The notes beneath the pieces were generated by a model, which saw nothing but the letters and a program-made list of their open reading frames with translations, was not told where the DNA came from and did not search any database. A stretch of DNA of 64,000 nucleotides from positions 1,984,001-2,048,000 of the forward strand of contig JANHCV010000002.1 in NCBI GenBank assembly GCA_025594325.1, read 5' to 3'. Each line of letters opens with the position of its first letter. Within the stretch, counting starts at the first letter, position 1. Made by a program: the position numbers and the translations under genes. Below are positions 14,051-48,083 of the stretch, one piece after another. Source of the stretch: Blastocladiella emersonii ATCC 22665. Taxonomy: Eukaryota > Fungi > Blastocladiomycota.

Positions 14051-15526
14051 TCATAGCACGTCGGAGCGCGCGTCAGCAGCCATCAACTTGGTGAGCAGCA
14101 CGTCCCACCCATCAGCGGATCCATCGCAGCGGGCGAACACCAAGTGGAGCGGCTTGTGACCGCGAATCTGCTTGCGTACCACTTTTGAGAACTCGGGCGT
14201 CGCGCGCAGCGCTTCGAGGATCACGGCAACGAAAGCGTCCCCGCGCGAGTTGGCGCAGCAGAGGGCGAAGTAGGCGCCATTGCGCGACGCGTCGGCCGCC
14301 GTCGCGTCGTTGGAGATGGGGCAGCCGGGGACCGGCACATGCGGGTATTGAGGGAGAGTAAGCAGGGCGTCAAACTCGGTGACGAGCGCACGGACAAGGT
14401 CCAGCGAACCGTGGTTGAGAACGCAAGTAAGGTACGACTGCGACTCGGACCCGCCTCGAGTCTCCTCGTCAGTTCCAGTCTTGAGCATGTGCGCACACTG
14501 GTGTCCAGTGGCGACGCCACGCGCACGGAAGACCGGAACGAGCATACGCACAAGGTTGACACGGTTTAAGTCGACAGCAACATCAAGCGCGGTTGGGGCG
14601 GACTCAGGCTCTAGCTACCCGGGGAACTTGATACGCACAAGCGGGATCGAGGTCGCGAGAAGGCGCTGGATGACTAGCGGGTTGCCACGCTGAACGGCAA
14701 GTGTAAGCAGGTCGTCCCCGCCAAACCACGCGTCGCAGTACCGTGGGGAAGCTGGGCCGTATCCTTAAGCAACGCACACTCAGTAAGCAGGTACTCGAGG
14801 ACGTCAGGCGCATTGTGTTCCACGGCGAGAGCATACAGGACAGCAGCCGTGCGCCTGTAAGCAAAGACTTCATCGGGAAGGAGCCGCGCGCCGAGCTCGA
14901 CGAGGACGCGAAGCGCGACGCGGAGTGCAATGGCCGAGTGGACGAGAAAGCGCTTCAGCTCCGTCTTGGGATTGACGACCGGGTGGTTGGCAAGCACCAC
15001 AGCACGATCCGCGTGGCGCGTGGTGATGAGGACGCGCGTTGCCGCGCAGAGCAGCAACGTGCAGGGCTACTGTCGAGCGTGGGTCGATGGAAGGATCCCG
15101 CATGCGCGACGCGCGCGCCGGGCTCGCGCTCGCGGCCAAGAGAAGGCGCGCGGCCTCGAAGTGGTCGTTGCGCATGGCGTGGACAAGTGGCGCCACCGCG
15201 TTTGGTAGTCCGACGGGCCGCGTGTTGGTCTTGCAGCCCATGGCGAGCAGCGCGCGGAGCATGTCGAGATTGCCAGACGCTGCAAATCGGCTGAGCTTGT
15301 GGACACGCTCCTCTGTCGTGACGTAGATCTTGTCGCAGGGAAGCGCGTCGACGGCGGCGGGGATCACTTGAGATGCGCTGCGCAGAGCGGTACAGTCTTT
15401 GGCATCAAGGTACCGCAAGCAGAGCGGGCGCCAGACGAGCGTGACACGCGTGAGATCAGCAAGCGTGGCGGTCGTGGCCGGCCGTTACGCCAAGTGTAGA
15501 TCGGCTCGCTGTGCTGCCGCATTCAT
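14051..15526 (-). pseudogene. F-box-like/ankyrin family copy C, degenerate and 3'-truncated
   Basis: ATG 15526, then TAA at 15485. TLADLTRVTLVWRPLCLRYLDAKDC. Pieces lie in ORFs 14870..15418, 14674..15057 and 14051..14551, separated by frameshifts. Ends after ARSDVL, without the family intron or last exon. Confidence 0.8.
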
Positions 15527-15663
15527 TTGATTTATGTTGATCTGAAGTAAAGAGGGTTGAGGAGAGAGAAGGCGGACCGGCTGGGGCCCGTTTTCTCTGC
15601 CGAGCGCCAATCGTTGCCGCCGACCAACGGCCACCGGGTCGTTCAACACGAAATTCGTTTCAG

Positions 15664-15790
15664 GCTTGCAGGCGTTCACCCCGTTTTGCAGGCAGCTCCC
15701 CACAGCTTTGCAGGCACCCCCGCCGCTTTGCAGGCAGCCCCGCCGCTTTGCAGGCCGCCGCGCTCCTTTGAGAGCTTCCCCGCCGCTTCG
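15664..15790 (+). repeat. Imperfect 20-21-bp tandem array (core CGCCGCTTTGCAGGC)
   Basis: (T)TTGCAGGC recurs about five times at ~20-bp spacing. Confidence 0.7.
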
Positions 15791-17832
15791 CAGCCAAGGG
15801 CCGCCGGCTGCAGACCACCTCCCCACCACCCTGCCCCTCGAACCCCCGCTCCCCGATCCCTCCGCATCACACACAGCGCTCTAATGCGAATTTATCGTCA
15901 TGTAACCACTGCAACAACTTGAAGCTTTGACTGAGCGCGCTCCCGGGCGGCGGCGTCGAGCCAGGCGCCAACACTGGCCCTGCCCTGCGTCCTACCCGCG
16001 CGCGAGCAGTCCTTCGCGACCCGCTCAGCCGCGCAGCCCGGCGCGCAGCCCCGCGCGAGACCGCCGCCCTGGCCAACGCGGGCGCCCCGTGCGGCGTGCG
16101 GCACGGCCTTGAGCACGCTGTTCGCGGCGGCACCGCATGCAACGTCGCCATGGCCCTGGCGGGCGCCGCCAACCTCGCCCTGAACGGCGTTTGATCGCTC
16201 ACGATCGACGCTCACTGCCCCGAGCTGCTCGCGCTCAGCATGTGAGCCCGGCGGCTTGCACGATCTACGAGCGGCGCAGCGTTGGCCGAGACGGCGCGCA
16301 GTCGGGGCGCGGCTTTTCGCGACCCGCGCTCGCTCGCCGCGGCGACGGTGAGCAGCTGAGAGGAGCGCCGGGCGCACGGCTGGAACGTGACGGAGCGGAG
16401 GCGGCGCGTAGCGCAGGGCGAGGTCAGCTCGAGCGGACCGACACAGAGAGGAGCGGCCGGGCCGGGCTTGCAGCAGCAGTGCGGGCGCGCACTCGCGCCG
16501 ACGCAAAGTCCCGAAAAGCACAGGGAGCGGGCGTGCTCGAAGTGACAGGCGCGTCACGTTTTGTGGCCTCCGCCCTTCGGCGATCACCGCGGCCTGGCGG
16601 CGGGCAAGCCACCCAGCCGCCAAACAAAGGGCGAGCGCCGCCGCCCGCCCCCGCTCTCTCCCCCGCCCGCCGCCCCCTCCTCACCACAACCACACGCACC
16701 AACGACATGCTTGGCAACACCGACGCCGTCGCGCGGCCCACACTGCACCGGCGCGCGCCGTGAACCTCTGCCTGCCTCTGGTCCGCCGCCGCCGCCGCCT
16801 CGCTCGCCCCTCGCTCGCCCCTCGCTCGCCCCTTGCCCACCTCCCTCCACCATCATGTTTGCAACCTCCCAGCCACCGCAGTACCCTCGCTCCCTACGCC
16901 AAACCGTCGCTCCCCGAATCCTCACGGCCGCCGCCGCTCCCCTTCGCCGCGACACTCTCGCTCCGCGCTACCCGTTCCACTCGTCACGGCTCGATCTCCC
17001 TCGACTACGCTGTCTGCGCACCTACTTGGTGCTCCGCTGACGCTGGTTGATGTCGCCCTCGCCGTCGCCAACTCGCTCGTCGCCCCGTCCCGTCAACCGC
17101 CGTGCCGATCCTGACCCGTCTCGTCTCGTCTCGCTGTGTAGTGCCCGCACGAACCTCGCTCACCAAGCCCGGCCACCGTCATCGCGCCCACCCGCTGGCC
17201 TCCTTCGAATCGACTAGTCGGGCTCGCACGCGGCCGCCGTCCGGTCCTCCTCGCCGCCGCCACCCGCCGCCGAGTCCCGGCCCGACCACCGTGTCCCGGT
17301 CGATCTCTCTCGCGGCAACGGTCTGCACACCTCTCACCAGGTCTCCCACGCGGCTTGTCTCTGACTCGTCGCGCCCCGCCTGCACCGTGTAGTCGGCTTC
17401 CGCGTGAACTCGCTCGCGCGCGCAAGGTCAACCGCGACAAGTACATGCATCTTCAAGCAGGCGACGGCCATGGCCACGGTACGCGCCCCGCGGCTTTTGC
17501 TTACCCGCGACAAGTCACTCACTCGCCTATTCCTCGTAGCGCTGATGATGCTGTACCCAAGCGCGCATCTCCCAAGCGCTGCAACTGTATGCCCAAGCTG
17601 ACCTCCAAGAATTCCCATGGTCACGGCCGCGTGCACGCGCCGGCTCGCTGATCGATGGCGGCCAAGCACGGTGTACTTCGGCCCTCTCGAATCGGCCGCG
17701 ACATGACGCGGTCGTTGCCCTCCTACCATCTCCCGCCCTCGATGTGCCTGATGATCAATACATTTTGTTCCTCCCTATATCTTTCTCGTGGACCCTAAGC
17801 GAAGCTGGAGCGTGAGCTGGCGAACCTATATT

Positions 17833-18034
17833 GAATTTTTCCTGGGCGTTTTGAAGGCGATAACAGCGTTTATAACCTTTAAAAGCGTGCGCAGACTTCA
17901 AAGGCGGGGGAGTGCTTTTGAAGGCGGCGGGGTGCTTTTGAAGGCTGGTGGCTGCCTTCAACGGCTCGACATGGCTTTTGAAAGCACCGCTTGCCTGCGG
18001 TGCCTTAATCGCCTTCAAAACGACCAAAAAAAAT
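17833..18034. repeat. ~200-bp inverted-repeat island with reiterated TTTGAAGGC motifs (MITE-like or a transposon end)
   Basis: CGTTTTGAAGGCGAT (17847-17861) and its reverse complement (18008-18022), with imperfect extension outward. Internal TGCTTTTGAAGGC at 17913 and 17933. AT-rich relative to its flanks. No clear TSD. Confidence 0.55.
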
Positions 18035-18279
18035 CGTGATGTTCTCAACTCTTTGCTCGACTCCTCAAGCTGCCAGCCGGGACTCACGGCCGTTCCCGCT
18101 CAGTGACGCAGATCCGCGCAAGGAACTTGGAGCATATGCCATTGCTCAACGAGCACGACGCGTGACAAAGTCGGAAGGACGCGTGAGCCAGCGCGTGAGC
18201 TGATCGCATCACTGATCCGCTGGCGAGGCCCTGAGCGCGGCCTCGCACGTGCGCGCTTCTCTCTCTCACCTTCCCAGAC

Positions 18280-19880
18280 ACGATCAAGGGTAGATACATG
18301 AAGCTAGGATTACATTATGATGGTATGGTACACGCGAACATCAGAGAAGGAGGCGAGGGAGGGCGAGCTTACTGCGCGGCGCCAGCATCGTTGTTGGCAT
18401 CGCCCGCGTTGTTGTTGTTGCCGTTCGCGTTACCGTTGTTGTTCGCGTTATCGTTGCCGTTGTCGTTGTTCCCGTTGCCGTTGTTGCGCTCCATCATGAC
18501 AGGCACGCACCCGCCAAACGGCCCCGCCGCGGCGGGGTTGCGGCAGCGGACGATGCACGCGTTCCCGTCAGCGCCGCCCGTGCACTGGGCGTTCTGCGGG
18601 ATCATGACGGTGAGCGGCTGCGGCGTCTTGTTGGTGCGGCCGTTGAGCCCGCGGCGACCCGGCAAGTTCTGCGTGACCTGGATGCGCTGGAAGTCGCGGC
18701 CCGAGGCCGACTGCGACAGCTCGCACGTGTATGGCCCCGCGCCGTCGGCGTTGACCTGGTGCACAGTCAGCGTCAGGGGCTGGCCGGGCGCGATCATGGG
18801 GAGGCCGCCCATCTGCTGCTTGATGGCGGCCATGCCGCGCTGGATGTTGTTGTTGCCGCCGGCGATGGTGCGGCCGCACGGACCCGACCGGCCCGACCGG
18901 ATGTCGCGGTCACGGATGATGGACGAGTCGCGCTGGAACGGGTTGGCGCGGGTGCCCGTGCGCGGCGTGTTGTCGAGCACGCCGATCGCCTTGCCCTGGA
19001 TGTTGTTGAGGCCCTTGGCGCCGACGATGGCGCCGTGCGCGTGGACCGAGGTGATGGCGGGCGAGAGCGCGGCCAGCGCGACGATGAGCGAGACGAGGAG
19101 GGCGAGCGAGGACGAGGTCTGCATCTTGATTTGTCGTGGAGAGAGGGCGTGTGTATGTGCAGGGACGGCCGGCGTCTTGGTGATGGTTGATGGAACAAGG
19201 AGCGCTGCTCGCTTGAGGTCTTTGAGTGTAGAAGGAGGATGTTGAGGGTGATGAGCGGAACGAAGGGATGGGCAGGGACACGCTCCCGTCTTATACTCCT
19301 CGTCGGTCCTCCCCCGTCGCGACCATGGTCGTCAGCAACCGCTGCGCACGCCCGCGCCCCACGCAGTCGCCGTGGCGACGACCCAAGCGTAGCCGCATCG
19401 CGTCGCAACGACTAGCTGAAACTGAGGACAAGAGCCACGCGCGCGAAACAGTTTCATGGCGGCGGCGCGACGCAGTGGAACCGTCGTGGAAGGCCGCGCC
19501 GCACCGCGCCACTCATGGGCACAGGCAGTCGGGTGCGGGGGGAGTGCAAAAGCGGGCGGTCGGCGAGGTGGCGCAGCGCGCTGCGCGAGCTGAGCCACGC
19601 CGACCAGCCGGGGCGCAGCGTCGCGGATCCATGGCCGAGCGGGCGCAGCGGCCTTGCCAAGTGCTACGCCCAGCCGTGGCGAGCCGACTCGAGTCGAGAG
19701 AGAGCCACCCGTTGTCTTCGACGCGTGAGCGACGTGAAGCGGTGGGGGAGGCGGGGGCGATGCGCGCCGCGCGATGGTCGCGCTGCGATCATCGGCGATG
19801 CTCGAGCGACGTCATCCTCTGCTGAGTCGCGATGCGCATCACGGCATAGGTGGATGTGAACGTCGCGCGGGGCGACGTGA
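18280..19880 (-). repeat. Left arm of a ~1.6-kb inverted duplication (partner 31251-32844)
   Basis: Position i pairs with 51131-i, with no indels from ~19867 to 18369. The ORF track gives identical peptides in several overlapping frames. Mismatches and indels were seen only at the ragged edges and the 3' end. Confidence 0.95.
18369..19124 (-). CDS. Secreted Egh16-like (DUF3129, GAS1/gEgh16 family) protein, 251 aa, copy 1
   Basis: Signal peptide ending SVHA-HG. Motifs PFQRDSSII, CGRT..GGNN, HQVNADGAGPYTC, CTGG..GNACIVRCRN..AAGPFGGC. Asn-rich tail. Confidence 0.9.
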   Translation of the reverse strand: MQTSSSLALLVSLIVALAALSPAITSVHAHGAIVGAKGLNNIQGKAIGVLDNTPRTGTRANPFQRDSSIIRDRDIRSGRSGPCGRTIAGGNNNIQRGMAAIKQQMGGLPMIAPGQPLTLTVHQVNADGAGPYTCELSQSASGRDFQRIQVTQNLPGRRGLNGRTNKTPQPLTVMIPQNAQCTGGADGNACIVRCRNPAAAGPFGGCVPVMMERNNGNGNNDNGNDNANNNGNANGNNNNAGDANNDAGAAQ

Positions 19881-20145
19881 CGCGTCGGGTCACCGAGATA
19901 GGCGATGCCCGAGCAACGTCGCAAGCTTCTTCAAACCGGGCTGCATGTAGACGTGAAGGTCAGGATACTGGATGGACCATGCGCGCAAGGAGCGCGAGTC
20001 AGGACGGCGACCGAGATTGAGGTAATATCATGTATCAATCAAGAACGCGAGCCGGTTTGCGGGCGAGGGTAAACTCGACGGGCTCATAGTAGTAGACAAA
20101 GGAAGGGAGAAGAACGAGCGAAAGACGAATATGACGCGAGAGCGC

Positions 20146-21448
20146 TTAGCAGCACTTGCCCGCGGGCTTAGCCTCCTCGCCCGAGGTCGGGGTGATGTTG
20201 ATGGTGTCCTTGGTCGGGGCGATCCCGGACGAGTTCTCCTCGAGCTGGCGCTTGGAGACGATCTTGTAGATCTCGGTGAGGATCTTCTGGAAGGCGAGCT
20301 CGACGTTGGTGGAGTCGAGGGCCGACGTCTCGATGAAGGAGAGGCCGTTGTCGGCGGCAAACTGCTTGGCCTCGTCCGTGGGCACGGCGCGCAGGTGGCG
20401 GAGATCCGACTTGTTGCCGACGAGCATGATGACGATGTTGGAGTCGGCGTGGTCGCGCAGCTCCTTGAGCCACCGGTTCACGTTCTCGTACGTCTGGTGC
20501 TTGGCAATGTCGTAGACGAGCAGGGCGCCGACGGCACCGCGGTAGTAGGCCGACGTGATGGCGCGGTACCGCTCCTGGCCGGCGGTATCCCAGATCTGCG
20601 CCTTGATGGTCTTGCCGTCGACCTGGATCGAGCGGGTCGCAAACTCGACGCCGATGGTCGACTTGGACTCGAGGTTGAACTCGTTGCGGGTGAAGCGCGA
20701 AAGCAGGTTCGACTTACCGACGCCCGAGTCACCGATCAGCACAACTAGGGGGCGGGGTCGAGGGTGTGAGTGATGCGTCGCGAGGCGGCGCGGCGGCGGC
20801 GCGGGGCCAGAGGACGACAGTGGACGGTCAGAGGGGAGCACACGAGCACACGCTTGCGTCGCGTATGCGCGAGGGCATGTCGCGAACCCCGGTGGGCCCA
20901 CGCACACGCACACGCTGAGTCGAGGTGCCGATGCGGGGTCGCAGGGTGGCGCGGGCGCAGGGGCGCAGCATGGGAACCGGGCGCGCAAATGAAGGGGTGC
21001 CCGACTTGGCTCCACCTGCGCGCCGGGCCGCGTGGGCGACGGGGGACGCGTGTCGGTCGCGGCGCCGAGCAGCGGGTGTGGCGATCGAGTTCACGGCCCT
21101 CGAGACGGGCGGTGGCGTCACCCCATACGACCGAGGGCGAGGCCGGACGCCATGAGCGACGCGGGCGAGCGTGCGAGTGGTACGGGGTTGCATGGTTGTC
21201 GATACATGGTGTCGTCGTCGCCGGGGCGCGCATACGTGGTGGGTCGGCGTCGGGTGGCGCGGTTGCCGAGACCGTTGCGCCGTCGCGCCGGTGCTGCTGC
21301 GCACAACAACGCGTCTCTGAATCGTGGGTGTGCTCTGCTCCATCCATCTCGTGTCCTCCTGCCCGCCCACGCGCACGCGAGAGCAGGACGAGTGGCGCGG
21401 CGGCAGCGTACCCTTGAAGAGGAAGTCGTACTCGTCGTCCTTGGACAT
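20146..21448 (-). CDS. YPT31: Rab11/Ypt31-family small GTPase, 211 aa
   Basis: Exons 21448-21412 ([12 protein letters not shown]) and 20744-20146, with a 667-nt intron 20745-21411 (GTACGC..TAG). [27 protein letters not shown] motifs and a C-terminal CC. Confidence 0.95.
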
Positions 21449-21806
21449 GTTGGCGGGGGGTTGTGGGATGGGTTTGCGGGGAGTAGCGGCGGCTGTACAA
21501 GCTACGTGGATGCTGGGCAGCCGATGCAGCGGGAGAGATGAAGAGCGCGGCGGGCGGGCGCGGCAGGGGAGGCGAGAGGGATCGTGGCGTCGGGCGGGCA
21601 GCAGCCGGGCGGCGTCGGCGGCGGCGGCGTCACTCCTCCAGAGGCGACCGCGTGGCCCACGCGCGCGAGGGCCCGAAAGGGTGGCTTTCCGCCCTCGCGT
21701 GACCCCCACGTGCGCGTGTACCGCTGGTTTCATCGTGTCTCGCACCCGCGTCTCACGCTCGCTTTTAGACAAACACGGACAGATGATCTATGGAATGGAA
21801 TGCACA

Positions 21807-23561
21807 TCACCAGAACGCGCGGCTCGACATACTCACCCACTGCGCCGCGAGCGCGAGCCGGTCGCGCGGCGACCGCAGCGCGAGGAGCCGGAACTTGGCC
21901 ATGTCGTCGACGTCGAGCGTGCCAGCGATCCAGTACGCGAGCATCGCCGGGTCGTCGGGCGGGCCGTCGCCCGTGGCCCGCCGGACCGCGTCGCGGTGCT
22001 GCGGCGGGAGCGACTCGAGGAACGTGCGGTGCGCCGCCGCCAGCAGCGCTGTGAGATCCGCGACCGAGTCAAACGACGCCGTCGGCGGGAGGACTGCCGC
22101 CTCGGCGAACCGCCGCCGCATGCGCGCCGCGAGCTGCACGGCGGCCCCCGCGGGGACCGGGTCGGCCGCGGCCAAAAACTCTTCGTCGACCACGGTCTCG
22201 ACGTCCGCCGCCGCGTACCCGCCGTCTGCCACGTGTACCGTGTCGGGGACGATGCGGAAGGCAAACTCGCCGCGCGAGTCGATCAGGGCGCGGCCGTCGG
22301 GCAGGAACCGCACGTCGTCGACGCGCAGCATCGTGCCGAGCCCGACCATCCCACCGCGCGGGTGGTGCATGACGAGCCCAAACCGCCGCGACGCGCCGGG
22401 CGCCGTGACCCGACGCAGCATCAGGCGGTACCGCGGCTCGAACAGGTGGAACGGCGCGTGCTCGCCCGGCAGCGCCACGTTGCACACGAACAGCGGCACG
22501 TTGCGGTACACGGTTGGCGCGTCCAGGTCTGCGCCCTCCTCTTCCTCATTAACTGCAGCCGTCGCTGCCGTCGCGCCGCCCGCGTTCGCCGCGAGCTCAG
22601 CCTCAACGGCGGCCTTGCGCACCGCGAACTGCTCGGGGAACCCGCGCTTAAACACGCGCGCGAGCGCCGTGTTCGCCGGGTGCTGGTGGTACGCGAGGTA
22701 CGACCCGGGCAGCGGCGACCGGCACACGAAGCACCGGAACTCGCCGCGCTGCTCGGCCGCGTGGTCCAGCGTGCGCAGCAGGCACGAACGGCACCCCGTG
22801 TGCCCGCACGACGCGATCGTCACCGGGTCGTAGTACGGCTGGTAGCACAGCGGGCAGTCGAAGTGCGACTCGAAGTCGGACCACGCCGCGAGGGGGGTTT
22901 CGGTGGTGTCGGCGGGGGTAGGTGGGGAGGGGGCGTCGCGCGCATCGCTCGGCGCGGTCGTCGAGGCGGAAGATGGTGGACGGTCGCGGCGCGGCGAGCG
23001 GGACCGGGAGCGCGCGGTCGATGGCGAGTGCGACCGGCGCGTCGATGTCGGTGAGCGGGACCGCGAGCGCGTGCGGGATGTGCGCGATGGGGATGATGTG
23101 CGCGAGGACAGCGGCGGGACGTCGTCGGCCGTGGTTGCCGCCGAGTCGCAGCGCTCCTTCTCCTCGCGCGCAGCGGTCGAGACGGGCTCTGCTTCGCGCT
23201 CTTCCTCCTCCTCAACCGCCTGTGTCGCCGGCGAGGGACCAGCGAGCGCGGCGAGCTTGCCAACGATCTCGGTGAGCGTCACGTCGTTGCCGAGTCGGCT
23301 CGCGGGGCCAATGTGGCTGTGCGGCGAGGCGCCCGTGACGGGGCACACGAACGTCGGGCGAGAGCTGTCTGCGGGCGATGTCGGCGAGGTCGGCAGGTCT
23401 GCGAGACACGCGCGGTGCACCGACGCGCCGCACGGCAGCGTCACGAGCGTGCCGGCGAGCGGCTCGCTGCACGCGCCGCAGACGAGCGTAGCGAGGAGGG
23501 CGCGCGGCGACAGCGGGGCGGGGATGGTGTCGTTGTTCTTCTTGGATTCAGCTTTGTTCAT
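21807..23561 (-). CDS. LON peptidase N-terminal domain and RING finger protein (LONRF-like E3 ligase), 584 aa
   Basis: Two RING-like motifs (CGACSEP..PCGASVHRAC; CPLCYQP..SCGHTGCRSC..CFVC), followed by VPLFVCNVALPGEHAPFHLFEPRYRLMLRR, typical of the LON substrate-binding domain. Confidence 0.9.
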   Translation of the reverse strand: MNKAESKKNNDTIPAPLSPRALLATLVCGACSEPLAGTLVTLPCGASVHRACLADLPTSPTSPADSSRPTFVCPVTGASPHSHIGPASRLGNDVTLTEIVGKLAALAGPSPATQAVEEEEEREAEPVSTAAREEKERCDSAATTADDVPPLSSRTSSPSRTSRTRSRSRSPTSTRRSHSPSTARSRSRSPRRDRPPSSASTTAPSDARDAPSPPTPADTTETPLAAWSDFESHFDCPLCYQPYYDPVTIASCGHTGCRSCLLRTLDHAAEQRGEFRCFVCRSPLPGSYLAYHQHPANTALARVFKRGFPEQFAVRKAAVEAELAANAGGATAATAAVNEEEEGADLDAPTVYRNVPLFVCNVALPGEHAPFHLFEPRYRLMLRRVTAPGASRRFGLVMHHPRGGMVGLGTMLRVDDVRFLPDGRALIDSRGEFAFRIVPDTVHVADGGYAAADVETVVDEEFLAAADPVPAGAAVQLAARMRRRFAEAAVLPPTASFDSVADLTALLAAAHRTFLESLPPQHRDAVRRATGDGPPDDPAMLAYWIAGTLDVDDMAKFRLLALRSPRDRLALAAQWVSMSSRAFW

Positions 23562-24037
23562 GGTCGGTCAGATGCAAGTTGAGGAGGGATCGTTCTCCAA
23601 GGCGGGCGCGGCCCGTACTTGTACCCTCGGCGGGCCAGGCTCCCGACGGCCCCATCGTCCATGCGATTCCGCGCGCGTCGCCGCACATCCGCGCGGGGAT
23701 GACCACGAGGGCGGCGGAGCTGATTAAGCGGCGCGCCGATCGCCGCGAACAGCGCAACCGCATCGGCGCTCCTTTTTGCGGAAGAGGCGCCGCCACGCGC
23801 GCTGCGCCATCACGGTCGCGTGCGTGGCGCTCCGCGTGGCGTCCGATATCGCGCGACCCGGGATCCCCCGACGCGCCGAGCCGGGACCCGCCGGTGTCTC
23901 CCGGTCGGTCCCTTGCGCGCCGACTGTCTCCTCTCCCCACGTTGCCGATCCCGCCTCGGGTATAAGAGCAGTCGGTCGCCGCGCTCCAGCCCTCCCTCGT
24001 CCCCGCACATCACCATCGAAGCAACGTATCAACCATC

Positions 24038-24982
24038 ATGGCCTGCAAGACGCTCCTCGCCACCGGCATCGCGGCCAAGTTCAGCGACGAGGTCCGCGCG
24101 TCCGCCACGGGCCTGACGCCGACGCCGGTGCTTGTCGGGTTCCTCGCCAACACGGACCCGGCCGCGGCCACGTACGCCGAGTGGACGGCCAAGGCGTGCG
24201 CGGACGTCGGGATCGCCTTCGAGCTGCGCACGGTGGAGCGGACGGACCTCGAGGACGCGATCATGGCGGCGAACCGCGACCCCGCGGTCCACGGCATCAT
24301 GGTCTACTACCCGGTGTTCGGGCCCGCGCAGGACCAGTACCTGCAGAACATTGTCAGCCCCGCCAAGGACGTCGAGGGCCTCTGCCACACGTACCGGTAC
24401 AACATGTACCACAACGTGCGGTTCCTCGACGCGCCCGCGGACCGCAAGAAGTGCATCATCCCGTGCACGCCGCTCGCCGTCGTCAAGGTCCTCGAGCACC
24501 TGCACATCTACAACCCGATGCTGCCCTACGGCGGCCGCCTCTACGGCAAGACCATCGCCGTCGTCAACCGGTCCGAGGTCGTCGGCCGCCCGCTCGCGGC
24601 CCTGCTCGCCAACGACGGCGCCCGCGTGCTGTCGGTCGATATCGGGGACGTGCTCGAGTTCCACCGCGGCGACGGCCTCGAGCACAAGCAGCACATTGTC
24701 AAGGAGACCAAGCTGACGGCCGACGAGGCCCTCGCGCTCGCCGACGTGGTCATCACGGGCGTCCCGTCGCCCAAGTACAAGGTCAACGTCGACCTGCTCA
24801 AGCCGGGCGTCGTCGCCATCAACTTCTCCTCCGCCAAGAACTTTGACGCCCCCGCCATCAAGGCCCGCGCCTCGCTCTACGTGCCGTCCGTCGGCAAGGT
24901 CACGGTCGCCATGCTGCAGCGCAACCTCCTGCGCCTCTACCAGTACCAGCTCGACGACGCCAAGGCCGCCGCCTCTTCCTAA
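24038..24982 (+). CDS. MTD1: NAD-dependent methylenetetrahydrofolate dehydrogenase, 314 aa
   Basis: KDVEGL, IIPCTPLAVVKVLE, GKTIAVVNRSEVVGRPLAALLANDGARVLSVD. Monofunctional fungal type. TATA-like GTATAAG near 23960. Confidence 0.93.
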   Translation: MACKTLLATGIAAKFSDEVRASATGLTPTPVLVGFLANTDPAAATYAEWTAKACADVGIAFELRTVERTDLEDAIMAANRDPAVHGIMVYYPVFGPAQDQYLQNIVSPAKDVEGLCHTYRYNMYHNVRFLDAPADRKKCIIPCTPLAVVKVLEHLHIYNPMLPYGGRLYGKTIAVVNRSEVVGRPLAALLANDGARVLSVDIGDVLEFHRGDGLEHKQHIVKETKLTADEALALADVVITGVPSPKYKVNVDLLKPGVVAINFSSAKNFDAPAIKARASLYVPSVGKVTVAMLQRNLLRLYQYQLDDAKAAASS

Positions 24983-25045
24983 TCCATCATCATCCCTATA
25001 ACTTAGTTGCATCATCTGATATATATCACCTCGCTTTACCCTACC

Positions 25046-28000
25046 CTACCCATCCCGATCGAACCGCACCCACACCTCGACCTCGCGCGTCACTGGCACA
25101 AACCGCTCGGGGCTCACTGGCCACCCGACCGCGACCCGCACACACGACGCCGCCGTCCAGCACCGCGCGGGCACCCACACCTGGCCCGCCCACTCGGTCT
25201 CGGACACGCCTGCCACGCGCACGGGGAACGACTCGTACGCGCCGTCGGGCCACGTCACGCGGACCGCGAGCTCGCGAACATCCGGCCCCGCCGCGTCGTC
25301 GCTCGCCGAACCCGTCAGCCGTACGGGCAGACGAAGCGGGAACCGCGACAGCACGCGGTGCGGGTTCCCCGGCCCCGCTGCACGTGCGGCGCTGCCGGAA
25401 AGCGGGACCTCGAGCGACCAGAACCGCCGCGTCACGTACACGCGCGCCGGGTCCGGCTGCACGAGCGCGATTGCCGCGCGGACGCGTGCTGCGGGTGACG
25501 ACGCGGCGGGCGTGGCCCAGATCTGTTGCCACGCGGACGGCGGCTCGTCGGCGGCGACAGGCTCGGATTTGACGGCGGCGGCAGCGGCGACGGGGCCCAG
25601 CGCGGGCGATGTCGGCGCGCTCGTGACGCGGCGCCGTGAGCGGGAGCGGGAGCGCGACTGCGACCCGCGCCGCGTCTGGCTGCGCCGCCGGCGCACGTTG
25701 GTGATGTTCCCGTTGTTAGAGTCTGAGTCGGGACCCGTGGCGTCGTCGAGCTCGACCGAGTAACGGTGCGCGAGGATCAGCGCCAGGTCCGCGGTCTGCG
25801 CGGTGTCGCCGTCGGCGTGCGCGAGCAGGTACGCGGCCAGGTCGAGGAGAAGGCGGAGCAGGGCGGGGTGGGATTCGGGTGGACCGCTACACAAAATGAG
25901 GGTGAGTTGGGAGCTGCGAGGGAGGAATGCGGAGAAGAGCACGTACCACGCCTCCTTGAGCGCGCCGATCTCAGCCTCGACGCCCGCCATATCGACGCTG
26001 GCGGCGTCCTCGGCCGTCGCTACCTGGAGCACCTGCGCGAGGTACTGGCTGACGGTCGCCGCGACCGACGTATCCCCACCATCTTCCTCCTCTACAGCGC
26101 GTGGCGAACCACCGCGCATCTCGGTCCGCCCGCGCGCCACCGACACCGTCGGCCCGCCCACGAGCTCGCCGGGTCCCGGGTCGGGCACCGCGCCCGGGTA
26201 CGCGTGGTGGATGTACGCGATCTGGCGGCGCACGAACAGCGGCAGCGTCGCGTGCAGCGCGGGCCGCAGGCGCGCCGCGTTCCACACGAGCGCGACCTTC
26301 GCAATGTGCTGGATGTCCTGCACGCGGTTCTCGGAGCACACGAAGCGCGGGTCGAGCTTCATGATGTGATTGGTCTCGGTCGCTATATGGTCGCGGCGGA
26401 GAGTCAGTGTTGTCGTCGAGGAGCGAGCGGAGGGGAGAGTGAGGGCGTACCGACGAGGTCCGTGTTCTGCTCAGCGACGCGGCGGAGACACGTCAGGACA
26501 GCAACGTGGTCCTGCGGGAACTGGTCGAGGTTACGGCGCAGCGCACGCACCAGCGCGCTCAGCGCGAGCGGCGCGGCGCACACGATGTTCGCGAGGAACG
26601 CGTACAGGTCGTGCCGGATCGCGGGCGACGCGTCGTGGAAGATTTCGGACGCGTCCTCGAGGTCGTGGTGCGTGAGCGTGACGGGGCCCGCGCCCGCGAT
26701 CGTGTTGAGCACCTGCAGCGCGTGCGCGCGGATCGACGGCACCTCGTCGTTCGTCATGTCGATGAGAAAGTACACGGCCGACTCGGCGAACGCGCGGTGC
26801 GTCGCGCTCAGCGCCGCGATCGCGTCGAGCGCCGCACGGCGCACCTCGGCGTACTCATCCTCCATGGCGTGCACGAACGCGCCCGCGTACGGCTCCCACT
26901 CGGGCGATAGGTGCGCGTCGCGGCCGTCGCGGTGACGCGAGGATTTCGATGGGCGGTCCGAGGTCGAGGAGGAGGTACTGGCGAGCGCTTTCTTGGACAG
27001 CGTCTGCAGCAGGAGCGCCGGCGTGATGCGCTCGAACTGGCCGAGCTCGGTCGTTGCCTACGCGGAGAAGCGGTGTGAGAGCGGTTCGCGGAAGAGAGGG
27101 AAGCCGACGTTGCGTACCGCGCATCGAGTCGCGATGATCGGGTCGTAGACGAGCTCCGCGACACGCATGAACGCGTCGTCGGCCATGGTCGCGGCCGCCG
27201 CGCCCTGGGACGCGCTCGCTTGCGACGGCGCGAGATGGGCGGGATGAGAGGGGTACATGTTGGCCATGATTCTACCCGTGTGACCGATGTAAGCGTCGCC
27301 GAGTCGAAGCGGAAAGAAACAAGGCCGTACCGAGCGAGGTGCGCGGCGATCTGGCGGACACTCGGCGCGGGATCAGCGAGACGCGTCACGATCCATGGGT
27401 ATAGCGAAGGGTCGAGGCTGCGGATCCCGCGAATGTGGTGCAGGTTAAGCAGGGCCTGGAGCGCCGTCTACCAAGTGCCGTCGCAACGTGCGGAACGTAA
27501 GCCGCCGTCCGCCCAAAAGTCGGCACCGAAAAAGTGTGAAAGCCGTACCTCGCGAACAAGGTCGACGGGATGGTACACGTAGCACTTGGCGACGTGCTGG
27601 AGCGCCAGCGGCGCCGCGTACTCGGGCGCGAGTCCGCCGCCCACGCTCTTCACGAGAACAATGTCGTCGCTGGCGGCGGCAGCGGCGGCGGCAGCGGCGG
27701 CGGCGGCGTAGAGCGAGTTGGAATAGCTCACGTCGTCGGAATCGGACGCCGAGTTCACTGACAGCGCGACTAGCCGCTCACAAAGCTCGCGCGCCGAGGC
27801 CGCGCTCGCGAGCGAGACCTGAAGCCGGCGCACCTCGGCGCTCGCCTCGTCGCTCACCGCGTCGGCACCCACGACGGGCGAAAACGGCCACGTCGCGGTT
27901 ACCTGGGCCACGGGCGACCCGCTTCGCGAGGGGGCGGGCGGGGTGCCGGAAACACTGCGAGTCGACGCGCGCATCTCGGCGACGGCGCTGCCCGGCCGCG

Positions 28001-28703
28001 CGCGCTTCGAGTCGGGCAACGAGCCGGCGCTGTCGTTGCTCGAGGGCCGCTTGCGCGGCGCGGGTTTTTGCTGGTTTGAGCTATTTTGTCTCTGGTTTTG
28101 CTGTTGCTGAGGGGGCAGTTGTTGTTGCTGCGACTTGGACTGCGACTGCGATTGAGAGGGCCGCCGTTGAAGCTGTTGCTGCTGCTTGGGCTGCTGTCGC
28201 GGCTGCGCTTGTGCAGAAAGATCCGAAGGCCGCTGCCTTGGACTCTCACCGTCGCGCGCCGAGTGCGGCGGAGTGGCGATCGACGCCGAGCCGGGGCGAG
28301 AAGGAAGCGCGGCGGCCGATCGAGAAGCCGCATCAACGCCGGAAGCCGACCTTTGGCTCCGCTGCTGACCGCGTAGAGGCGGCTCAACGGTCGCGGTCGC
28401 GGCAACGGCGACAAGGCCGCCGCCGGCCGCGGGATCAGAAAGCAAGTCGACGCTGGCCCTCCGCACGCGGATGCCGGGGTGCTTCGCGGCAGCGGCGGCA
28501 GCGGAGGGAGCGGAAGCGGAAGGGTGGCCGGTGCTGAGCGAGCGGGCGGGCGGCGCCGGGGGCGACGGGCCCTTGCTGCCGGGCGCGGGCGCGGGCGGGC
28601 GCAACCTCGGATCCATGGGAGTGCGTGCGTCGGGAGCGGGTGGGTCGATACGTTGCAGCGAGTCGGGGGACGTGGTCATCATCGTGTGGAGGCCCTCGCC
28701 CAT
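25046..28703 (-). CDS. INTS4: Integrator complex subunit 4 homolog (HEAT repeats), ~1100 aa
   Basis: Six exons: 28703-27549, 27467-27331, 27271-27118, 27057-26451, 26382-25947, 25886-25046. All introns are GTACG..TAG and phases are consistent. Motifs LLQTLSKK and GAFVHAMEDEYAEVRRAALDAI..FLIDMTNDE. The start codon (28703, 28682 or 28679) is uncertain. Confidence 0.8.
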
Positions 28704-28983
28704 GGGATCGCCAAGGTTCGCGACCCGCGCCCGCCGCCACGCGCGCGACCGACCGGCGGCGCGGGAAGACGAGAGCGCGGCGCGCGGTCACCGTGAGACA
28801 CGTGTGCGCCGTCTTCGCGATATCGCGACTCGACGATGCGCGAGCGAACGATGCATCCGCCCTCTCCTTCGCTCGCCTGCAACGACGACGACGGCATCGA
28901 CCACGACCACGAAGCGGCGCACTCGCCCTCCCACTCTCCCCCGCACTCGCTGCATTCGCCTGAGACACGCCCTCCCGCCCGCC

Positions 28984-31060
28984 ATGGCCGACATGTATCC
29001 CGAGGACGACCTGTCCAACGCCATCCTCGCCATGGTCGACGGCGGCGGGTCGCCCGCGCGCGGCGCCGACGACGGGTACCGCGGCTCGGGGTCCTCGGGC
29101 CACCGCAAGGCCAGCCGCCGCGCGCACAGCGACGAGGACGACGACAACGACGACGACGACGCGGACGGCGCCGGCCACCGCAGCAGCCGGCGCGGCCGCG
29201 CATCGCGCCGCCACTACGACGACGATGACGACGACAGCGAGTCGGACCGCGGCGCGCCCCGCGGCGGCGGCGGCAACGAGGACGACGAGGTCGATACGTG
29301 GGGCCCGGACCTCATCGGCAACTCGCGCGACCGCGAGTGGCTCGAGTCGCTGCCGATGCTCGAGCGCGAGCGCATCCTGTCGGACCGCGCCGACAAGCGC
29401 CAGGCCGTCGAGGAGCGCCGCCAGCTGCAGAACAAGCTGCGCGAGCTGAACCGGCACTCTGGCGGCGACGCGGCGTCCGCCGGCAGTGGCAGCGACACGC
29501 GCCCCGACAAGAAGCGCCGCCTCGAGGCCCTCGTCGACAAGCGCGACGAGAAGCGGCGACGCAAGGGCGACGGCTCGGGCTCGTCCGACTCGCGCCGCCG
29601 CAAGCGCCAGTACGACGACGACTCGGACAGCGAGTACGACGACGGCCCGCGCGCCCGCAAGCCCGCCGCCAACGACGACTCGGACGACGACAACGGCGGC
29701 CGGTACGCGTGCGGCCGCGCGAGCTATGACTCGGACGACGAGCCCGACCGCCGCGACCGCCGCGCCGGGTCCGGTCGCCGCAGCCGCTCCCGCAGCCCCG
29801 AGTGGAGCCGCCGCCGCTCGCCGCCGCCCCGCAACCTCGACTCGAGCCCCGACACCCGCCGCCGTTCCCCCGCGCGCGCACCCGCGGTCCCCTTCACGCT
29901 CGCCGAGGCGCGCGGCATGCAGCTCACGCGGAATCACGTTGAGACGTGGTGCTACGCGACCTTCTTCGAGGAGCTCGCGCAAGGTACTCGTTCTCGCGCA
30001 TCCGCGTGGTGTTCGGATCCGCTGACACCTCGACTCCTGCGTGTAGACACGCTCGTCCGCGTCCGTGTCGGCGACCAGGGCGGCGTGCCCGTGTACCGCA
30101 TCGGACAAGTCGTGGGTACGGTGTACTCTTGATGACCCGCCGCACGAACGAATTCGGCTGACGCTCAACCGCGTGATCGCAGACGTGTCCAAGTACAAGC
30201 GCATCTACACGATCCAGAGCGTCAAGACCAACAAGGCCTTCAGCCTCAAGCACGGCCAGGCCGAGCGCACCTTCCTCGCCGACGTCTTCTCCAACCAGCC
30301 CTTCACCGAGGTATGCTCGCTCACTGTTTCGCCAGTCGACTGAGCTCTCCGCTCACGACCCATCACTCGACCGTAGAACGAGTTTGAGCGGTGGCGCCTG
30401 ACCTGCGAGAACGAGTCGACGCCCCTCCCAACACACGAGACCGCCGCGGCCAAGAAGAAGGCGATCGCGACCGCCACCGCGTACATCTTCAGCGACGCCG
30501 AGGTGCGCGCCATGCTCAAGGCCCGCTCCGAGGTTGGCGCCGCCCCGCGCAACGTCGTGAACGAGAAGGCCGAGTTGCTGCGCAAGCGCGACGCGGCCAT
30601 GAGCTCGGGCGACACCGAGGCGCTCGCCGAGATTGAGGCCAAGCTCGCGGCGCTCCAGGAGATGCTCGAGGCCCGTACCGCTGCTGCTGGCGCGGTCGGC
30701 GGAGCCGCCATGGCCAACAAGCGCAACGTCAAGGGCGCTGCGCGAGCGTACACGGGCGCGCCCATTATCAAGTTCGCGCCCGCCGCGGTCACGGCTGCGG
30801 CCATGCAGCGCAACACGGCGGCGAGTCTCGTCGCGCTTGGTCGCGTCGACACGTACGCTTTCTCAACGCGGTACTCGACTGCTGCATGAAACTGACCACA
30901 CCTCGCTGCACCGTGTAGCCTTCAGGACTCGCTCGCGCCCAACGCGTACCTCCCGTCGCAGTCCATCGACGCGGACGAACCGGCCGACACGGGCATGTCC
31001 GTGCACGACCTCTTCGCGTCTGGACCGAAGCTCGACATTGACATTGACATTGACATCTGA
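28984..31060 (+). CDS. RTF1: RNA polymerase-associated protein Rtf1 (Paf1 complex, Plus3 domain), 604 aa
   Basis: Exons 28984-29983, 30047-30115, 30183-30310, 30377-30852, 30919-31060 with consistent phases. DREWLESLPMLERERILSDR, VRVRVG..PVYRIGQV, KHGQAERTF..FSNQPFTENEF, C-terminal LDIDIDIDI. Confidence 0.9.
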
Positions 31061-31250
31061 GCCGTCGCGGCGGCTTACCGAACCCGTGCGAGTCTCCGCT
31101 GCGTGCTCGGAAGTAAACTTTTTCGTATCCCTTAAATGTATCTGGCACGCTTCCGATAGACCTTGCTCGAGTTGACCATCGGGGGAGGGGCGGGTTGAGC
31201 AACTGTGAGACGTCCTTCGCGTGAAGGATCGTGCGACTGGTCGACGGCGA

Positions 31251-32844
31251 TCATGTCGCACCTCGCGACGTTCACATCCACCTATGCCGTGATGCGCATC
31301 GCGACTCAGCAGAGGATGACGTCGCTCGAGCATCGCCGATGATCGCAGCGCGACCATCGCGCGGCGCGCATCGCCCCCGCCTCCCCCACCGCTTCACGTC
31401 GCTCACGCGTCGAAGACAACGGGTGGCTCTCTCTCGACTCGAGTCGGCTCGCCACGGCTGGGCGTAGCACTTGGCAAGGCCGCTGCGCCCGCTCGGCCAT
31501 GGATCCGCGACGCTGCGCCCCGGCTGGTCGGCGTGGCTCAGCTCGCGCAGCGCGCTGCGCCACCTCGCCGACCGCCCGCTTTTGCACTCCCCCCGCACCC
31601 GACTGCCTGTGCCCATGAGTGGCGCGGTGCGGCGCGGCCTTCCACGACGGTTCCACTGCGTCGCGCCGCCGCCATGAAACTGTTTCGCGCGCGTGGCTCT
31701 TGTCCTCAGTTTCAGCTAGTCGTTGCGACGCGATGCGGCTACGCTTGGGTCGTCGCCACGGCGACTGCGTGGGGCGCGGGCGTGCGCAGCGGTTGCTGAC
31801 GACCATGGTCGCGACGGGGGAGGACCGACGAGGAGTATAAGACGGGAGCGTGTCCCTGCCCATCCCTTCGTTCCGCTCATCACCCTCAACATCCTCCTTC
31901 TACACTCAAAGACCTCAAGCGAGCAGCGCTCCTTGTTCCATCAACCATCACCAAGACGCCGGCCGTCCCTGCACATACACACGCCCTCTCTCCACGACAA
32001 ATCAAGATGCAGACCTCGTCCTCGCTCGCCCTCCTCGTCTCGCTCATCGTCGCGCTGGCCGCGCTCTCGCCCGCCATCACCTCGGTCCACGCGCACGGCG
32101 CCATCGTCGGCGCCAAGGGCCTCAACAACATCCAGGGCAAGGCGATCGGCGTGCTCGACAACACGCCGCGCACGGGCACCCGCGCCAACCCGTTCCAGCG
32201 CGACTCGTCCATCATCCGTGACCGCGACATCCGGTCGGGCCGGTCGGGTCCGTGCGGCCGCACCATCGCCGGCGGCAACAACAACATCCAGCGCGGCATG
32301 GCCGCCATCAAGCAGCAGATGGGCGGCCTCCCCATGATCGCGCCCGGCCAGCCCCTGACGCTGACTGTGCACCAGGTCAACGCCGACGGCGCGGGGCCAT
32401 ACACGTGCGAGCTGTCGCAGTCGGCCTCGGGCCGCGACTTCCAGCGCATCCAGGTCACGCAGAACTTGCCGGGTCGCCGCGGGCTCAACGGCCGCACCAA
32501 CAAGACGCCGCAGCCGCTCACCGTCATGATCCCGCAGAACGCCCAGTGCACGGGCGGCGCTGACGGGAACGCGTGCATCGTCCGCTGCCGCAACCCCGCC
32601 GCGGCGGGGCCGTTTGGCGGGTGCGTGCCTGTCATGATGGAGCGCAACAACGGCAACGGGAACAACGACAACGGCAACGATAACGCGAACAACAACGGTA
32701 ACGCGAACGGCAACAACAACAACGCGGGCGATGCCAACAACGATGCGGGCGCTGCGCAGTAAGCGATCCTCTACCTGTCTTTGATGTTAGCGTGTGCCAT
32801 ACCATCATAATGTAATCCTAGCTTCATGTATCTACCCTTATCGT
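31251..32844 (+). repeat. Right arm of the ~1.6-kb inverted duplication (partner 18280-19880)
   Basis: Reverse complement of the left arm. Includes the promoter (TATAAG at 31836), 5' UTR, CDS and part of the 3' UTR. Confidence 0.95.
32007..32762 (+). CDS. Secreted Egh16-like (DUF3129) protein, 251 aa, copy 2 (protein identical to copy 1)
   Basis: Same translation as 18369..19124. Two synonymous differences seen in the last codons. Confidence 0.9.
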   Translation: MQTSSSLALLVSLIVALAALSPAITSVHAHGAIVGAKGLNNIQGKAIGVLDNTPRTGTRANPFQRDSSIIRDRDIRSGRSGPCGRTIAGGNNNIQRGMAAIKQQMGGLPMIAPGQPLTLTVHQVNADGAGPYTCELSQSASGRDFQRIQVTQNLPGRRGLNGRTNKTPQPLTVMIPQNAQCTGGADGNACIVRCRNPAAAGPFGGCVPVMMERNNGNGNNDNGNDNANNNGNANGNNNNAGDANNDAGAAQ

Positions 32845-33130
32845 TGTTGAGAAGACGGGAGGAAAGCGAGAGGGAGGTGATGGGCGGGGTCGCAGGTGAG
32901 CAACAAGCACCCCACACATCCGGTCCTCGCGACCAGTCACACTATCGAGATGTTGACATGACAAGGAAACAATTGCATGGAGTTTCATGTGGACTAGATC
33001 AAGACGTCGTGACGAGCGGGGGAAAAAGAGTCGGGGCAAGCTCGGCTGGCTGCACTTCCGAGCACTGTGAAATCGTGGCCGCCTCGCGGGCAGCTCTCTC
33101 TCCCCACACGCATGTATTCTCCACATCACC

Positions 33131-35597
33131 ACGAAATCGAATGAATTGCACACTGGGGCCGGTCCGGTACCGGAACGACCGCTGGCGGCAGCTGCTTCTA
33201 AGACCTTGGTTTTGGTGGACCTCACCAACGTCTCGCTCGTCTGGAACCCGCTCTGCTTGCGTTACCTTGCACCCAAGGATTGCGCTGCGCTGCGACCCGC
33301 TTCTCGAGCAATGCGTACCGCCATCGATTCCCTGCCGCTCAACAAGCTCTTCGCGTCCGGTGATGATCGCGCGCGCGCACTTTGCGGCTTCGCCTCGTCG
33401 GGTAACGTTCCCATGCTTCGCGCCGTTCTCACTCTCGTGTCATCGCCCGATATTCGCCCCGCTGGCGTCCCCGACTCTGTCCCGGCCTTGATCCACGCCG
33501 TGCGCGCCAATCAGCTCGAAGCGGCGCACGTTCTTGTCACAGCTGGCGCAAGTCCCGCTGCAGGCGGGGCGAAGAGCGCCAGGTCTGTTATCGACCCACG
33601 GGAGACTATCCCGCTGCAGCTCGCTGCGAGACGTGGTAAAGTTGCCATGCTGCGCGCCCTCATTAACGCCAGCCATGCCGACCAGGCCGCGGAACTCGCC
33701 AATCACGTGGCCGTCGAGCCCAAGACGGGATTGCGCCGCTCGCTTGCGCATTCGGCCATCGAGTCTCGTTCCGCTGAGCTTCTGCGCGTCCTAGTCAACG
33801 AGTTGGGCGCGTGCTTACTTCCAGCCGATCCGGCGAAACATGCGTCGGCGGCCGCTGTCCTCATCGCCCTCGCAGTCAAACACGACGCACCCGCCATGCT
33901 CGACCTACTTCTCACGGATTACAAGCTGCCAACGACGGCTATTCAGCTCCCTCAATTGTACCGCAATGCTTGGTTCGACGAACTTGACCTCCTTCCTCTC
34001 GCCGTTCAACATGGCAACCTCTACGTCGTTCGTCGCCTGCTGGCTGCAGGTATCCCGCTGACACGCTCGTCCGACGGTTTACCTATCCGAGGCGTAACCA
34101 CTGCGCTCGATATCGCCGTTCACATGGACCGTGTCGACCTCGCGCGCGCGCTCATCGAAGCTTTTCGCTCGTGCAATCTTGCTCTCGGTCACGAGTGCTC
34201 GCACTTTCGCAAATTGAAAGCCAAGGACGGCAGCTGCATGTCCCAGCCCTACCTCCATTGTGCCATCGAACACGGCTCGCTCGAATTAGCCCGTACGCTT
34301 ATCAGCTTTGGCGCACCGCTCTCAATGTCTGGATTCACGCACGTGGCTGTGCCGGGCTGCCCAGTCTCCAACGACATGATGTCGTCCGCTGACGCGACCA
34401 ACGACGGCGCCTACTACTTGCTTTGCCGCGCTGCCTCGCGCAGTGACGAGTTTGTTTCTCTCGTTATTGGTGCGCTTTGGGCTCGGTGCGGACCCTCCGT
34501 ACCAATCCCATGGAACGCGTCGCCCTACTTTTCGAGTATCCTGCGCGACCATCTCCGCAACCATACGCCGCTTCACTCTTTGCTTGGCCGCCGCGCTGAC
34601 TTGGTTGACGGCTGGGATCCGCTGCTTGACGAGATGCTGGCCGGCGGCGCTCGCTCCGACTCTCGCGATCTGGACGGGTTGTACCCGCATGATGTTGCCG
34701 TGAAAACCGTCGGCATCGATCATCCTTGGATTGTCGATCTTGTCACTCGTGGCATGCGTGCTTCTTTTTCGACTATAACCGCTCTCATCGCGCTGGCCGG
34801 GATCAAAGGCGATACGGCGCGGCTCGCTGCCCTGCTCCCGCACGTCACTGCTGCGATCAAGGTTGATCAGTTGGCGGGGCACGGCGGCACGCCCATGGAC
34901 GTTCCGCTCAATGTACGTTTGCTTAGGGTTAATGTTGGCATGGGTCCAGGTCACTGACGTGCGAGAGTAGTTTGCATCTGGCGTGCGGCGCGGCAGACCC
35001 GAACTCAAGTACCCGATTCTTGGCACTCGACTTGGCGCTCCTTCCGAGTCGCAGGCGCCCACAGACCTTGCCGACCATGACGGCGATGTGGATCTCACTA
35101 ACCCCGCATTCGCGCTGCTTGCCACTCCGCTGTTCCGCGCCGTCGCGCGCCGCAAGTACACGGTCGTACGTCTTCTACTTCGCCATGGCGCGCGACCGAA
35201 CGTCGGGCTTGACCATGCTTCGTACGACACGCTTCATCGTACGTTCACTCAGCGGTCGCCGATTGCTCAGGCGATCCTGACCGGCGACCTGGCCATGTTC
35301 GCGCTGCTCCTTGAAAACGGCGCAAGACTGTGGCTCGGCGAACACGACATGCGTTGGTGTGACAATCCAGCGGAGGGTCGCTATTGCTCTCAATTCCGCC
35401 CAGCTGCCGCTAAATCGGAGCCGCGCAAGTGCCGAATCACACCCCTCCACCTCGCCGTGTACCTGCGCTGGATATTGCAGGAGCGCGCTGCAGCGTCAAG
35501 TGGTGACGTCGGCATCCCGCCCAACCTCAAGCCTGACACGCTTGGTTTGCCGCAGTTGGCGGCACTCAGCCTGGACTCTCCTCTGAAAGCAGCATAG
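33131..35597 (+). CDS. F-box-like/ankyrin family copy D: open frame, no ATG at the homologous start, shortened C-terminus
   Basis: ACG AAA TCG AAT GAA at 33131 aligns with ATG CAA TCG AAT GAA of paralogs. Exon to 34912, intron 34913-34970 (GTACGT..TAG), exon 34971-35597. Could be a pseudogene. Confidence 0.65.
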
Positions 35598-35948
35598 TAC
35601 TATGCCGACCATGTCGTTCTCCGCTCCGTTCAAGTGGTCATCATCAGGAGGCGCCACCGCAGGGCCGTTTGGTGGTCTGACCAACCCGTTCACCTTGGCG
35701 CAGAAGCAAAGCGAGTGACGACTTGAGCAGGAAAGCATCAATAACGACGAAACACATGTTTCCTTTCTATCGCAAGCTCTTCAGTGGAGCGGAAGCGGAG
35801 CGATCATTCGCGGTCGCAGTCGATGAACGACGCGTCCTGAAGCGCCGCCACGTGAAACGCCACCGAGTCACTCGCTCGTCCCCACGCCACCGCTCACCGC
35901 CGCCGCTACGGTTCCCTTCGCCCCTCCCCTCCTTCAACAGTCGACCCC

Positions 35949-38900: not shown

Positions 38901-39030
38901 CACTTTCGCCGCACCATCCGTCACTGCGTCGTTCGAGTGGCCGTTGGTGGGAGCGGGCGCATCTGGTTTTGGAATCTTCCGCGGGGCCGCCAACGCGTGG
39001 GCATCCGCCACGACCAAGGAGAGCGAATAG
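35949..39030 (+). CDS. F-box-like/ankyrin family copy E, apparently intact, ~1006 aa
   Basis: Exons 35949-37718 and 37780-39030. 61-nt intron GTACGC..GCTAAC..TAG joins ORFs 35949..37892 and 37792..39030 in frame. Confidence 0.85.
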
Positions 39031-48000: not shown

Positions 48001-48083
48001 AGTTTCCGTTCACCGTTCCGACCCGCTGGCCTCGTCCAGCTACGTTCGCCAGGGCACCCAACATGTGGGGATCGATGGCGTAG
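45028..48083 (+). pseudogene. F-box-like/ankyrin family copy H, full length with a single in-frame TGA
   Basis: ATG 45028. TGA at 46474-46476 is in frame with ORF 46510... Intron 46789-46844 (GTACGC..TAG). Last exon 46845-48083. Confidence 0.8.

Follow-up and report, generated by a model that had tools for sequence, protein, structure and literature searches.

Why should two inverted copies of a gene and its upstream DNA be identical to the last base over most of their length, yet differ at both ends? This question is raised by a locus of Blastocladiella emersonii ATCC 22665. The window analyzed here is a 64,000-nt stretch of that genome (JANHCV010000002.1:1984001-2048000, assembly GCA_025594325.1), and all positions below refer to it unless another contig is named. 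Within the window, two arms of ~1.6 kb, each with a gene for an Egh16-like secreted protein, face each other across a block of five unrelated genes. The pattern of identity and difference between the arms is very likely the product of gene conversion, by which the interior of an older inverted duplication was overwritten recently.

A repeat finder placed the inverted arms at 18367-19880 and 31251-32764, with a length of 1514 nt, an identity rounding to 100%, and a spacer of 11,370 bp between them. A repeat of such length is far beyond chance. These coarse arms were refined by base-by-base alignment and exact string comparison, and the features listed below, in order of position, are those obtained after refinement together with the genes that they contain.

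18270..19890, minus strand: left arm, full detectable homology (arm alignment)
18286..18347, minus strand: outer homology island of the left arm, in the 3' untranslated region (UTR), 62 nt with 3 mismatches
18369..19124, minus strand: Egh16-like gene, left copy, 251 aa, stop codon included (translation; PF11327, E = 6.6e-55)
18385..19867, minus strand: left perfect core, the presumed latest conversion tract (exact string comparison)
19125..19880, minus strand: upstream/promoter region in the left arm, with no protein-family match and private to the pair
19891..31242, no strand assigned: unique spacer with five genes (Pfam scans and NCBI gene calls)
31243..32855, plus strand: right arm, full detectable homology (arm alignment)
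31264..32746, plus strand: right perfect core (exact string comparison)
32007..32762, plus strand: Egh16-like gene, right copy, with a protein identical to that of the left copy (translation; gene calls)
32778..32839, plus strand: outer homology island of the right arm (repeat finder and alignment)

By exact string comparison, positions 18385-19867 are the reverse complement of 31264-32746, with zero differences in 1,483 bp. This core consists of 743 bp located 5' of the ATG and of the Egh16-like coding sequence minus its final 14 bp. The edges of the arms have a different character. On the inner side, the alignment showed mismatches at 19868, 19871, and 19877, followed by a 2-bp indel, and homology is gone by ~19890 in the left arm and ~31243 in the right arm. 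On the outer side, there are mismatches at 18378 and 18384, which lie in the last codons and are both synonymous, so the two translations are identical. Beyond the stop codon lies a strongly diverged patch of ~19 bp with a 6-bp indel (18348-18366), and beyond that patch an island of 62 bp (18286-18347 and 32778-32839) aligns again with 3 mismatches (95% identity). Outer homology is gone by ~18270 and ~32855. Altogether, 0 of 1,483 core positions differ, as against 8 point differences in 137 edge positions plus two indels (Fisher p = 2.2e-9).

The original prediction, which had been made from the window's letters, had described near-identical inverted repeats of ~1.6 kb, and its coordinates were correct, as the aligned arms at ~18270-19890 and ~31243-32855 demonstrate. 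Its claim that the arms run without indels over ~1.5 kb held in a stricter form, since the 1,483-bp core has no difference of any kind. The ~740 bp of non-coding DNA that it assigned to the arms was counted as the 743 bp 5' of the ATG, and the divergence that it saw at the edges was found again as the 6-bp indel in the 3' UTR and the two synonymous changes in the last codons (18378 and 18384).

The edges and the core suggest different histories. Because the edges have diverged by ~5-20% and have acquired indels, the duplication does not appear to be new. The identity of the core extends over 743 bp of non-coding DNA and over all synonymous sites within it and, therefore, selection on the protein was ruled out as its cause. 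Homogenization by conversion of an older duplication, as had been proposed in the original prediction, agrees with the contrast between a core free of differences and diverged edges, with the identity at non-coding and synonymous sites, and with a like signature at a second pair of Egh16-like genes that is described below.

The events would have been as follows. An inverted duplication of ~1.6 kb would have placed one complete Egh16-like gene, together with its whole upstream intergenic region, on both sides of the 11.4-kb block. After the duplication, the edges would have diverged by ~5-20% and gained indels. The interior would then have been replaced by non-reciprocal homologous recombination, i.e., intrachromosomal gene conversion, leaving the tract of 1,483 bp without differences. 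The inner limit of such a tract would be set by the end of homology, which the core nearly reaches, and its outer limit by the patch with the 6-bp indel; the core breaks off 14 bp short of the stop codon, immediately in front of this diverged patch. An occasional crossover between the arms would probably flip the spacer with no effect on function, and the output of the secreted protein would probably be doubled by the presence of two identical promoter-gene units.

Several points weigh against this reading. The arms are known from the assembly consensus only, and conversion is read from the pattern of identity in one genome, as B. britannica does not have the pair. The duplication is hard to date from so little diverged edge (~20 bp on the inner side and ~115 bp on the outer side). 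Also, polishing with Pilon using 65-bp reads could have erased a very small number of true differences between the arms.

The second pair of Egh16-like genes is located on contig 1 (JANHCV010000001.1), where there are two genes for the paralogue P0005 (252 aa, H9P43_001730), on the minus strand at ~4.5396 Mb and on the plus strand at ~4.5599 Mb, so that the two are inverted in a heads-in arrangement ~19.5 kb apart. Their arms align over 1,019 bp. A perfect core of 891 bp takes in 115 bp upstream, the whole coding sequence, and 17 bp downstream, and the edges are 8-20% diverged, with 13 mismatches in 63 bp on the upstream side and 5 in 64 bp on the downstream side. Heads-in copies, a perfect core, and diverged edges are, thus, common to the P0005 pair and the pair in the window, and the P0005 pair is an independent replicate of the signature. 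A Peptidase_M24 gene adjoins the left P0005 copy, and in Catenaria the tandem Egh16 genes likewise lie beside one, which suggests that the left P0005 copy is at the ancestral site.

Comparison with relatives indicated where the pair in the window arose. In B. britannica (MU624593.1:3397-24505), the genes for MTD1 (plus strand), a HEAT/INTS4-like protein (minus strand), and a Plus-3/RTF1 protein (plus strand) have the same order and orientation as in B. emersonii, and the genes that flank these three differ between the two species on both sides. No Egh16-like sequence was found within 10 kb on either side of the three genes in B. britannica. The block without flanking Egh16-like genes in this species places the origin of the pair within the lineage of B. 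emersonii. Catenaria showed no synteny with the block. The Egh16 loci of B. britannica and Catenaria were considered as orthologues of the inverted pair and rejected, since they are tandem pairs on the same strand and in other neighborhoods. In a maximum-likelihood tree, the pair in the window is sister to H9P43_001508 of B. emersonii and the third copy in the window (53.9-55.2 kb), with a Catenaria gene as outgroup.

Another possible explanation is a very recent inverted duplication without any conversion, in which the edge differences are scars of error-prone break-induced or template-switching synthesis. This fits the confinement of all differences to within ~20-115 bp of the ends of homology, and a young origin is allowed by the lack of an orthologous pair in B. 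britannica. Nevertheless, we consider it improbable. Repair at a junction is expected to leave microhomology, filler DNA, or templated insertions and not dense, dispersed substitutions, and the edges carry scattered substitutions at 5-20% along with separate indels. The 62-bp island at 95% identity lies beyond the diverged patch, and two of the changes are synonymous ones within the coding sequence. A like pattern was also found at the P0005 pair, with its 13 mismatches in 63 bp. An artefact of assembly or polishing is a different kind of explanation, in which a single copy was placed twice or diverged copies were homogenized by the consensus or by Pilon. According to passages of the genome paper, the assembly was made from PacBio high-fidelity (HiFi) reads with a mean length of 10.5 kb (6.37 Gb for 34.3 Mb), with purge_dups for cleaning and 65-bp Illumina reads for polishing by Pilon (PMC9730499). 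The polishing reads are not uniquely placeable inside the arms, which speaks for such an artefact; however, short reads that map to both arms would give mixed calls at a true difference, so that no majority for a base change would arise. The HiFi reads, whose depth is given as ~186x in the same passages, span an arm of 1.6 kb together with unique sequence on either side of it (PMC9730499). A false duplicate would also not be expected to have separate unique flanks on both sides and separate diverged edges, as each arm does, and the same signature is present at the second locus on contig 1. Therefore, we give almost no weight to an artefact. Copies of a transposable element were considered as well and rejected because there is no terminal inverted repeat of the arm unit and no transposase, and the ends of homology fade instead of stopping sharply. 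The Pfam scan of the open reading frames in the arms found no transposase or recombinase domain, and the sole candidate for a terminal inverted repeat, of 17 nt, belongs to just one arm and is located beyond the homology. The original prediction had likewise reported neither a transposase nor terminal inverted repeats, and the Pfam scan of the arms and the check for terminal repeats bore this out.

The arms could, instead, serve to flip the 11.4-kb block back and forth by crossover at an appreciable frequency, with the inversion being used by the cell. A perfect inverted homology of 1.48 kb at a distance of 11.4 kb is well suited to crossover, which often comes with conversion, as is established for yeast inverted repeats and sex-chromosome palindromes (PMC3723533). 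Since a crossover in the 1.48-kb homology would flip the spacer, rare inverted molecules are expected on general grounds. An active switch is a different matter, and we give it very little credence. Pfam found no recombinase or invertase domain in the scanned open reading frames of the arms and the spacer. Each arm is a complete promoter and gene, and the genes at the ends of the spacer meet the arms with their 3' ends, so no promoter-gene junction would be altered by an inversion. Also, the assembler settled on one orientation at ~186x, and no observation at this locus supports the original prediction's proposal that the block occurs in two orientations. With no recombinase found and with an inversion that changes no link between promoter and gene, there is no basis for calling the locus a switch. 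Known flip-flop systems, such as the large inverted repeats of plastids, the FLP/FRT system of the yeast 2-micron plasmid, and the invertase switches of bacteria, resemble this locus in that inverted repeats flank an invertible segment. In those systems, both isomers are frequent or there is a gene for a site-specific recombinase, and in some of them expression depends on the orientation. In contrast, the B. emersonii locus has neither a recombinase nor a consequence for expression, and it is known in one orientation, that of the assembly.

Conversion between the arms, our preferred explanation, has its closest likeness in the gene-bearing palindromes of the mammalian X and Y chromosomes (e.g., human P1-P8; PMC3723533, PMC8981503). 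Both consist of inverted arms around a unique spacer, both have functional genes in the arms, and in both the identity of the arms is kept by intrachromosomal gene conversion, which at the B. emersonii locus is the probable cause. Inversions of the spacer that arise rarely by crossover would be a further likeness. There are also clear differences. The arms of B. emersonii are 1.6 kb long with one gene each, compared to 9 kb to 1.45 Mb in the mammalian palindromes, and the chromosome on which they lie, in a zoosporic fungus, is an ordinary one. Conversion was read here from one genome and not from population or cross-species data.

The gene within the arms belongs to the Egh16-like / GAS1 / CAS1 / TrsA family (PF11327). 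Its protein matched the full Pfam domain (model positions 1-183 of 183) with 186.9 bits against a cutoff of 25 (E = 6.6e-55). Both copies are intact, and their 5' ends are directed toward the spacer. The assembly has exactly two genes for this protein, and one public contig, JANHCV010000002.1, carries it. The N-terminus is hydrophobic and signal-like, and there is a short Asn/Gly-rich tail. In an alignment of 20 diverse Egh16-like members, H30, H122, and F203 were invariant. His30 would be the first mature residue after the likely cleavage of the signal peptide at VHA|HG. Roles in a copper site have been proposed for the N-terminal His, the second His, and the Phe of the family (PMC12377627), and all of these proposed copper-site residues (H30, H122, and F203) are kept in the arm protein. 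The arm protein is probably secreted and similar to a lytic polysaccharide monooxygenase (LPMO). It resembles other PF11327 proteins in its full-length domain and in keeping the family-invariant N-terminal His, second His, and Phe of the GPFGG motif. It differs from them in its short tail and in its host, which is a saprotrophic zoosporic fungus and not a pathogen that forms appressoria or traps.

The DNA upstream of the gene is as much a part of the repeat as the gene itself. The 756 bp 5' of the gene in each arm had no protein-family match, and the NCBI gene calls place no gene between RTF1 and the right Egh16-like copy. The arms resemble other paralogues in the conserved domain alone, where nucleotide identity is 71-81%. 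No other paralogue has the promoter, the Asn-rich tail, or the 3' UTR of this pair. With two intact genes under identical promoters, a doubled dosage and output of the protein is plausible. A third Egh16-like paralogue in the window, P0003 (401 aa, 53509-55194, plus strand), has a long low-complexity tail. Its comparison with the arm copies gave no sign of conversion, and its DNA is ~81-84% identical to the arm genes in the domain only.

The spacer carries five genes, as the original prediction had said, and the identities that it gave to four of them agree with the Pfam matches, in the case of its Rab11 at the level of the Ras family. A Ras-family (Rab-like) GTPase on the minus strand has its body at ~20146-20745 (E = 7e-37 for the piece at 20146-20580). 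Pfam and the gene calls together identified a RING and LON-substrate-binding protein (21807-23561, minus strand), the NAD-dependent methylenetetrahydrofolate dehydrogenase MTD1 (24038-24982, plus strand), and a Plus-3/RTF1 protein (28984-31060, plus strand). The fifth gene, which had been called INTS4, stands less firmly under that name. It encodes a HEAT-repeat, INTS4-like protein of 989 aa (25046-28616, minus strand), and its match to INTS4_C was sub-threshold (E = 0.18). The terminal genes of the spacer, those of the Ras-family protein and RTF1, both direct their 3' ends at the arms, which start ~180-260 bp past the stop codon of the adjoining spacer gene. It follows from this orientation that each arm carries a complete intergenic promoter.

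Taken as a single locus, this is a small and ordinary case of gene conversion between inverted paralogues, by a mechanism that is known. Its value lies in one well-resolved case that is replicated within the gene family, and it marks an Egh16/LPMO-like secreted protein with a doubled copy number and identical regulatory DNA. A paper search returned no description of such repeats in B. emersonii, and the available passages of the genome paper do not mention them (PMC9730499). If the pattern extends over the genome, this early-diverging fungus would be a tractable system in which the rates of mitotic conversion and inversion could be obtained from existing HiFi reads, and annotators would be cautioned that identical paralogues in this genome reflect homogenization and not recent duplication. 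A much wider reading can be put forward, in which B. emersonii maintains gene-bearing inverted repeats throughout its genome by frequent conversion, as an autosomal fungal counterpart of the sex-chromosome palindromes, with spacers that flip measurably and with heterogeneity within a clonal culture. We think this rather unlikely. To our knowledge, B. emersonii has no sexual cycle. If there were such a genome-wide set, selected genes would be preserved or doubled in it, and Egh16-like proteins, as putative secreted oxidases, would have been captured twice independently.

The DNA outside the arms is occupied by an ankyrin-repeat family that is mirrored about the locus. Four copies lie to the left, all on the minus strand (2470-15628), and six lie to the right, all on the plus strand (33128-52905). 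The nucleotide matches between the two flanks were inverted in 19 of 19 cases. The copies are 40-56% identical to each other, and the innermost left copy groups with right-hand copies with a split support of 100/100, the remaining tree being star-like. An ankyrin gene may, thus, have been part of the original inverted duplication, of which only the Egh16 part would still undergo homogenization.

A GC-rich stretch (15540-18050, up to 73.5% GC) separates the left arm from the innermost ankyrin copy on the left and contains arrays of a 20-bp tandem repeat at 15681-15793 and 17901-17945. Since the corresponding gap on the right side is only ~290 bp, the GC-rich stretch is possibly an insertion. 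A search of 15540-18050 yielded neither terminal inverted repeats nor protein-family matches, and the idea that the 20-bp arrays beside the left arm are the terminal repeats of an insertion found no support. On the other side of the locus, the gene calls are empty for 10 kb beyond the right Egh16-like copy (32763-42762). Three long open reading frames of the ankyrin family (603, 647, and 789 aa) lie within this uncalled region, and repeat masking may have hidden the family from the annotation.

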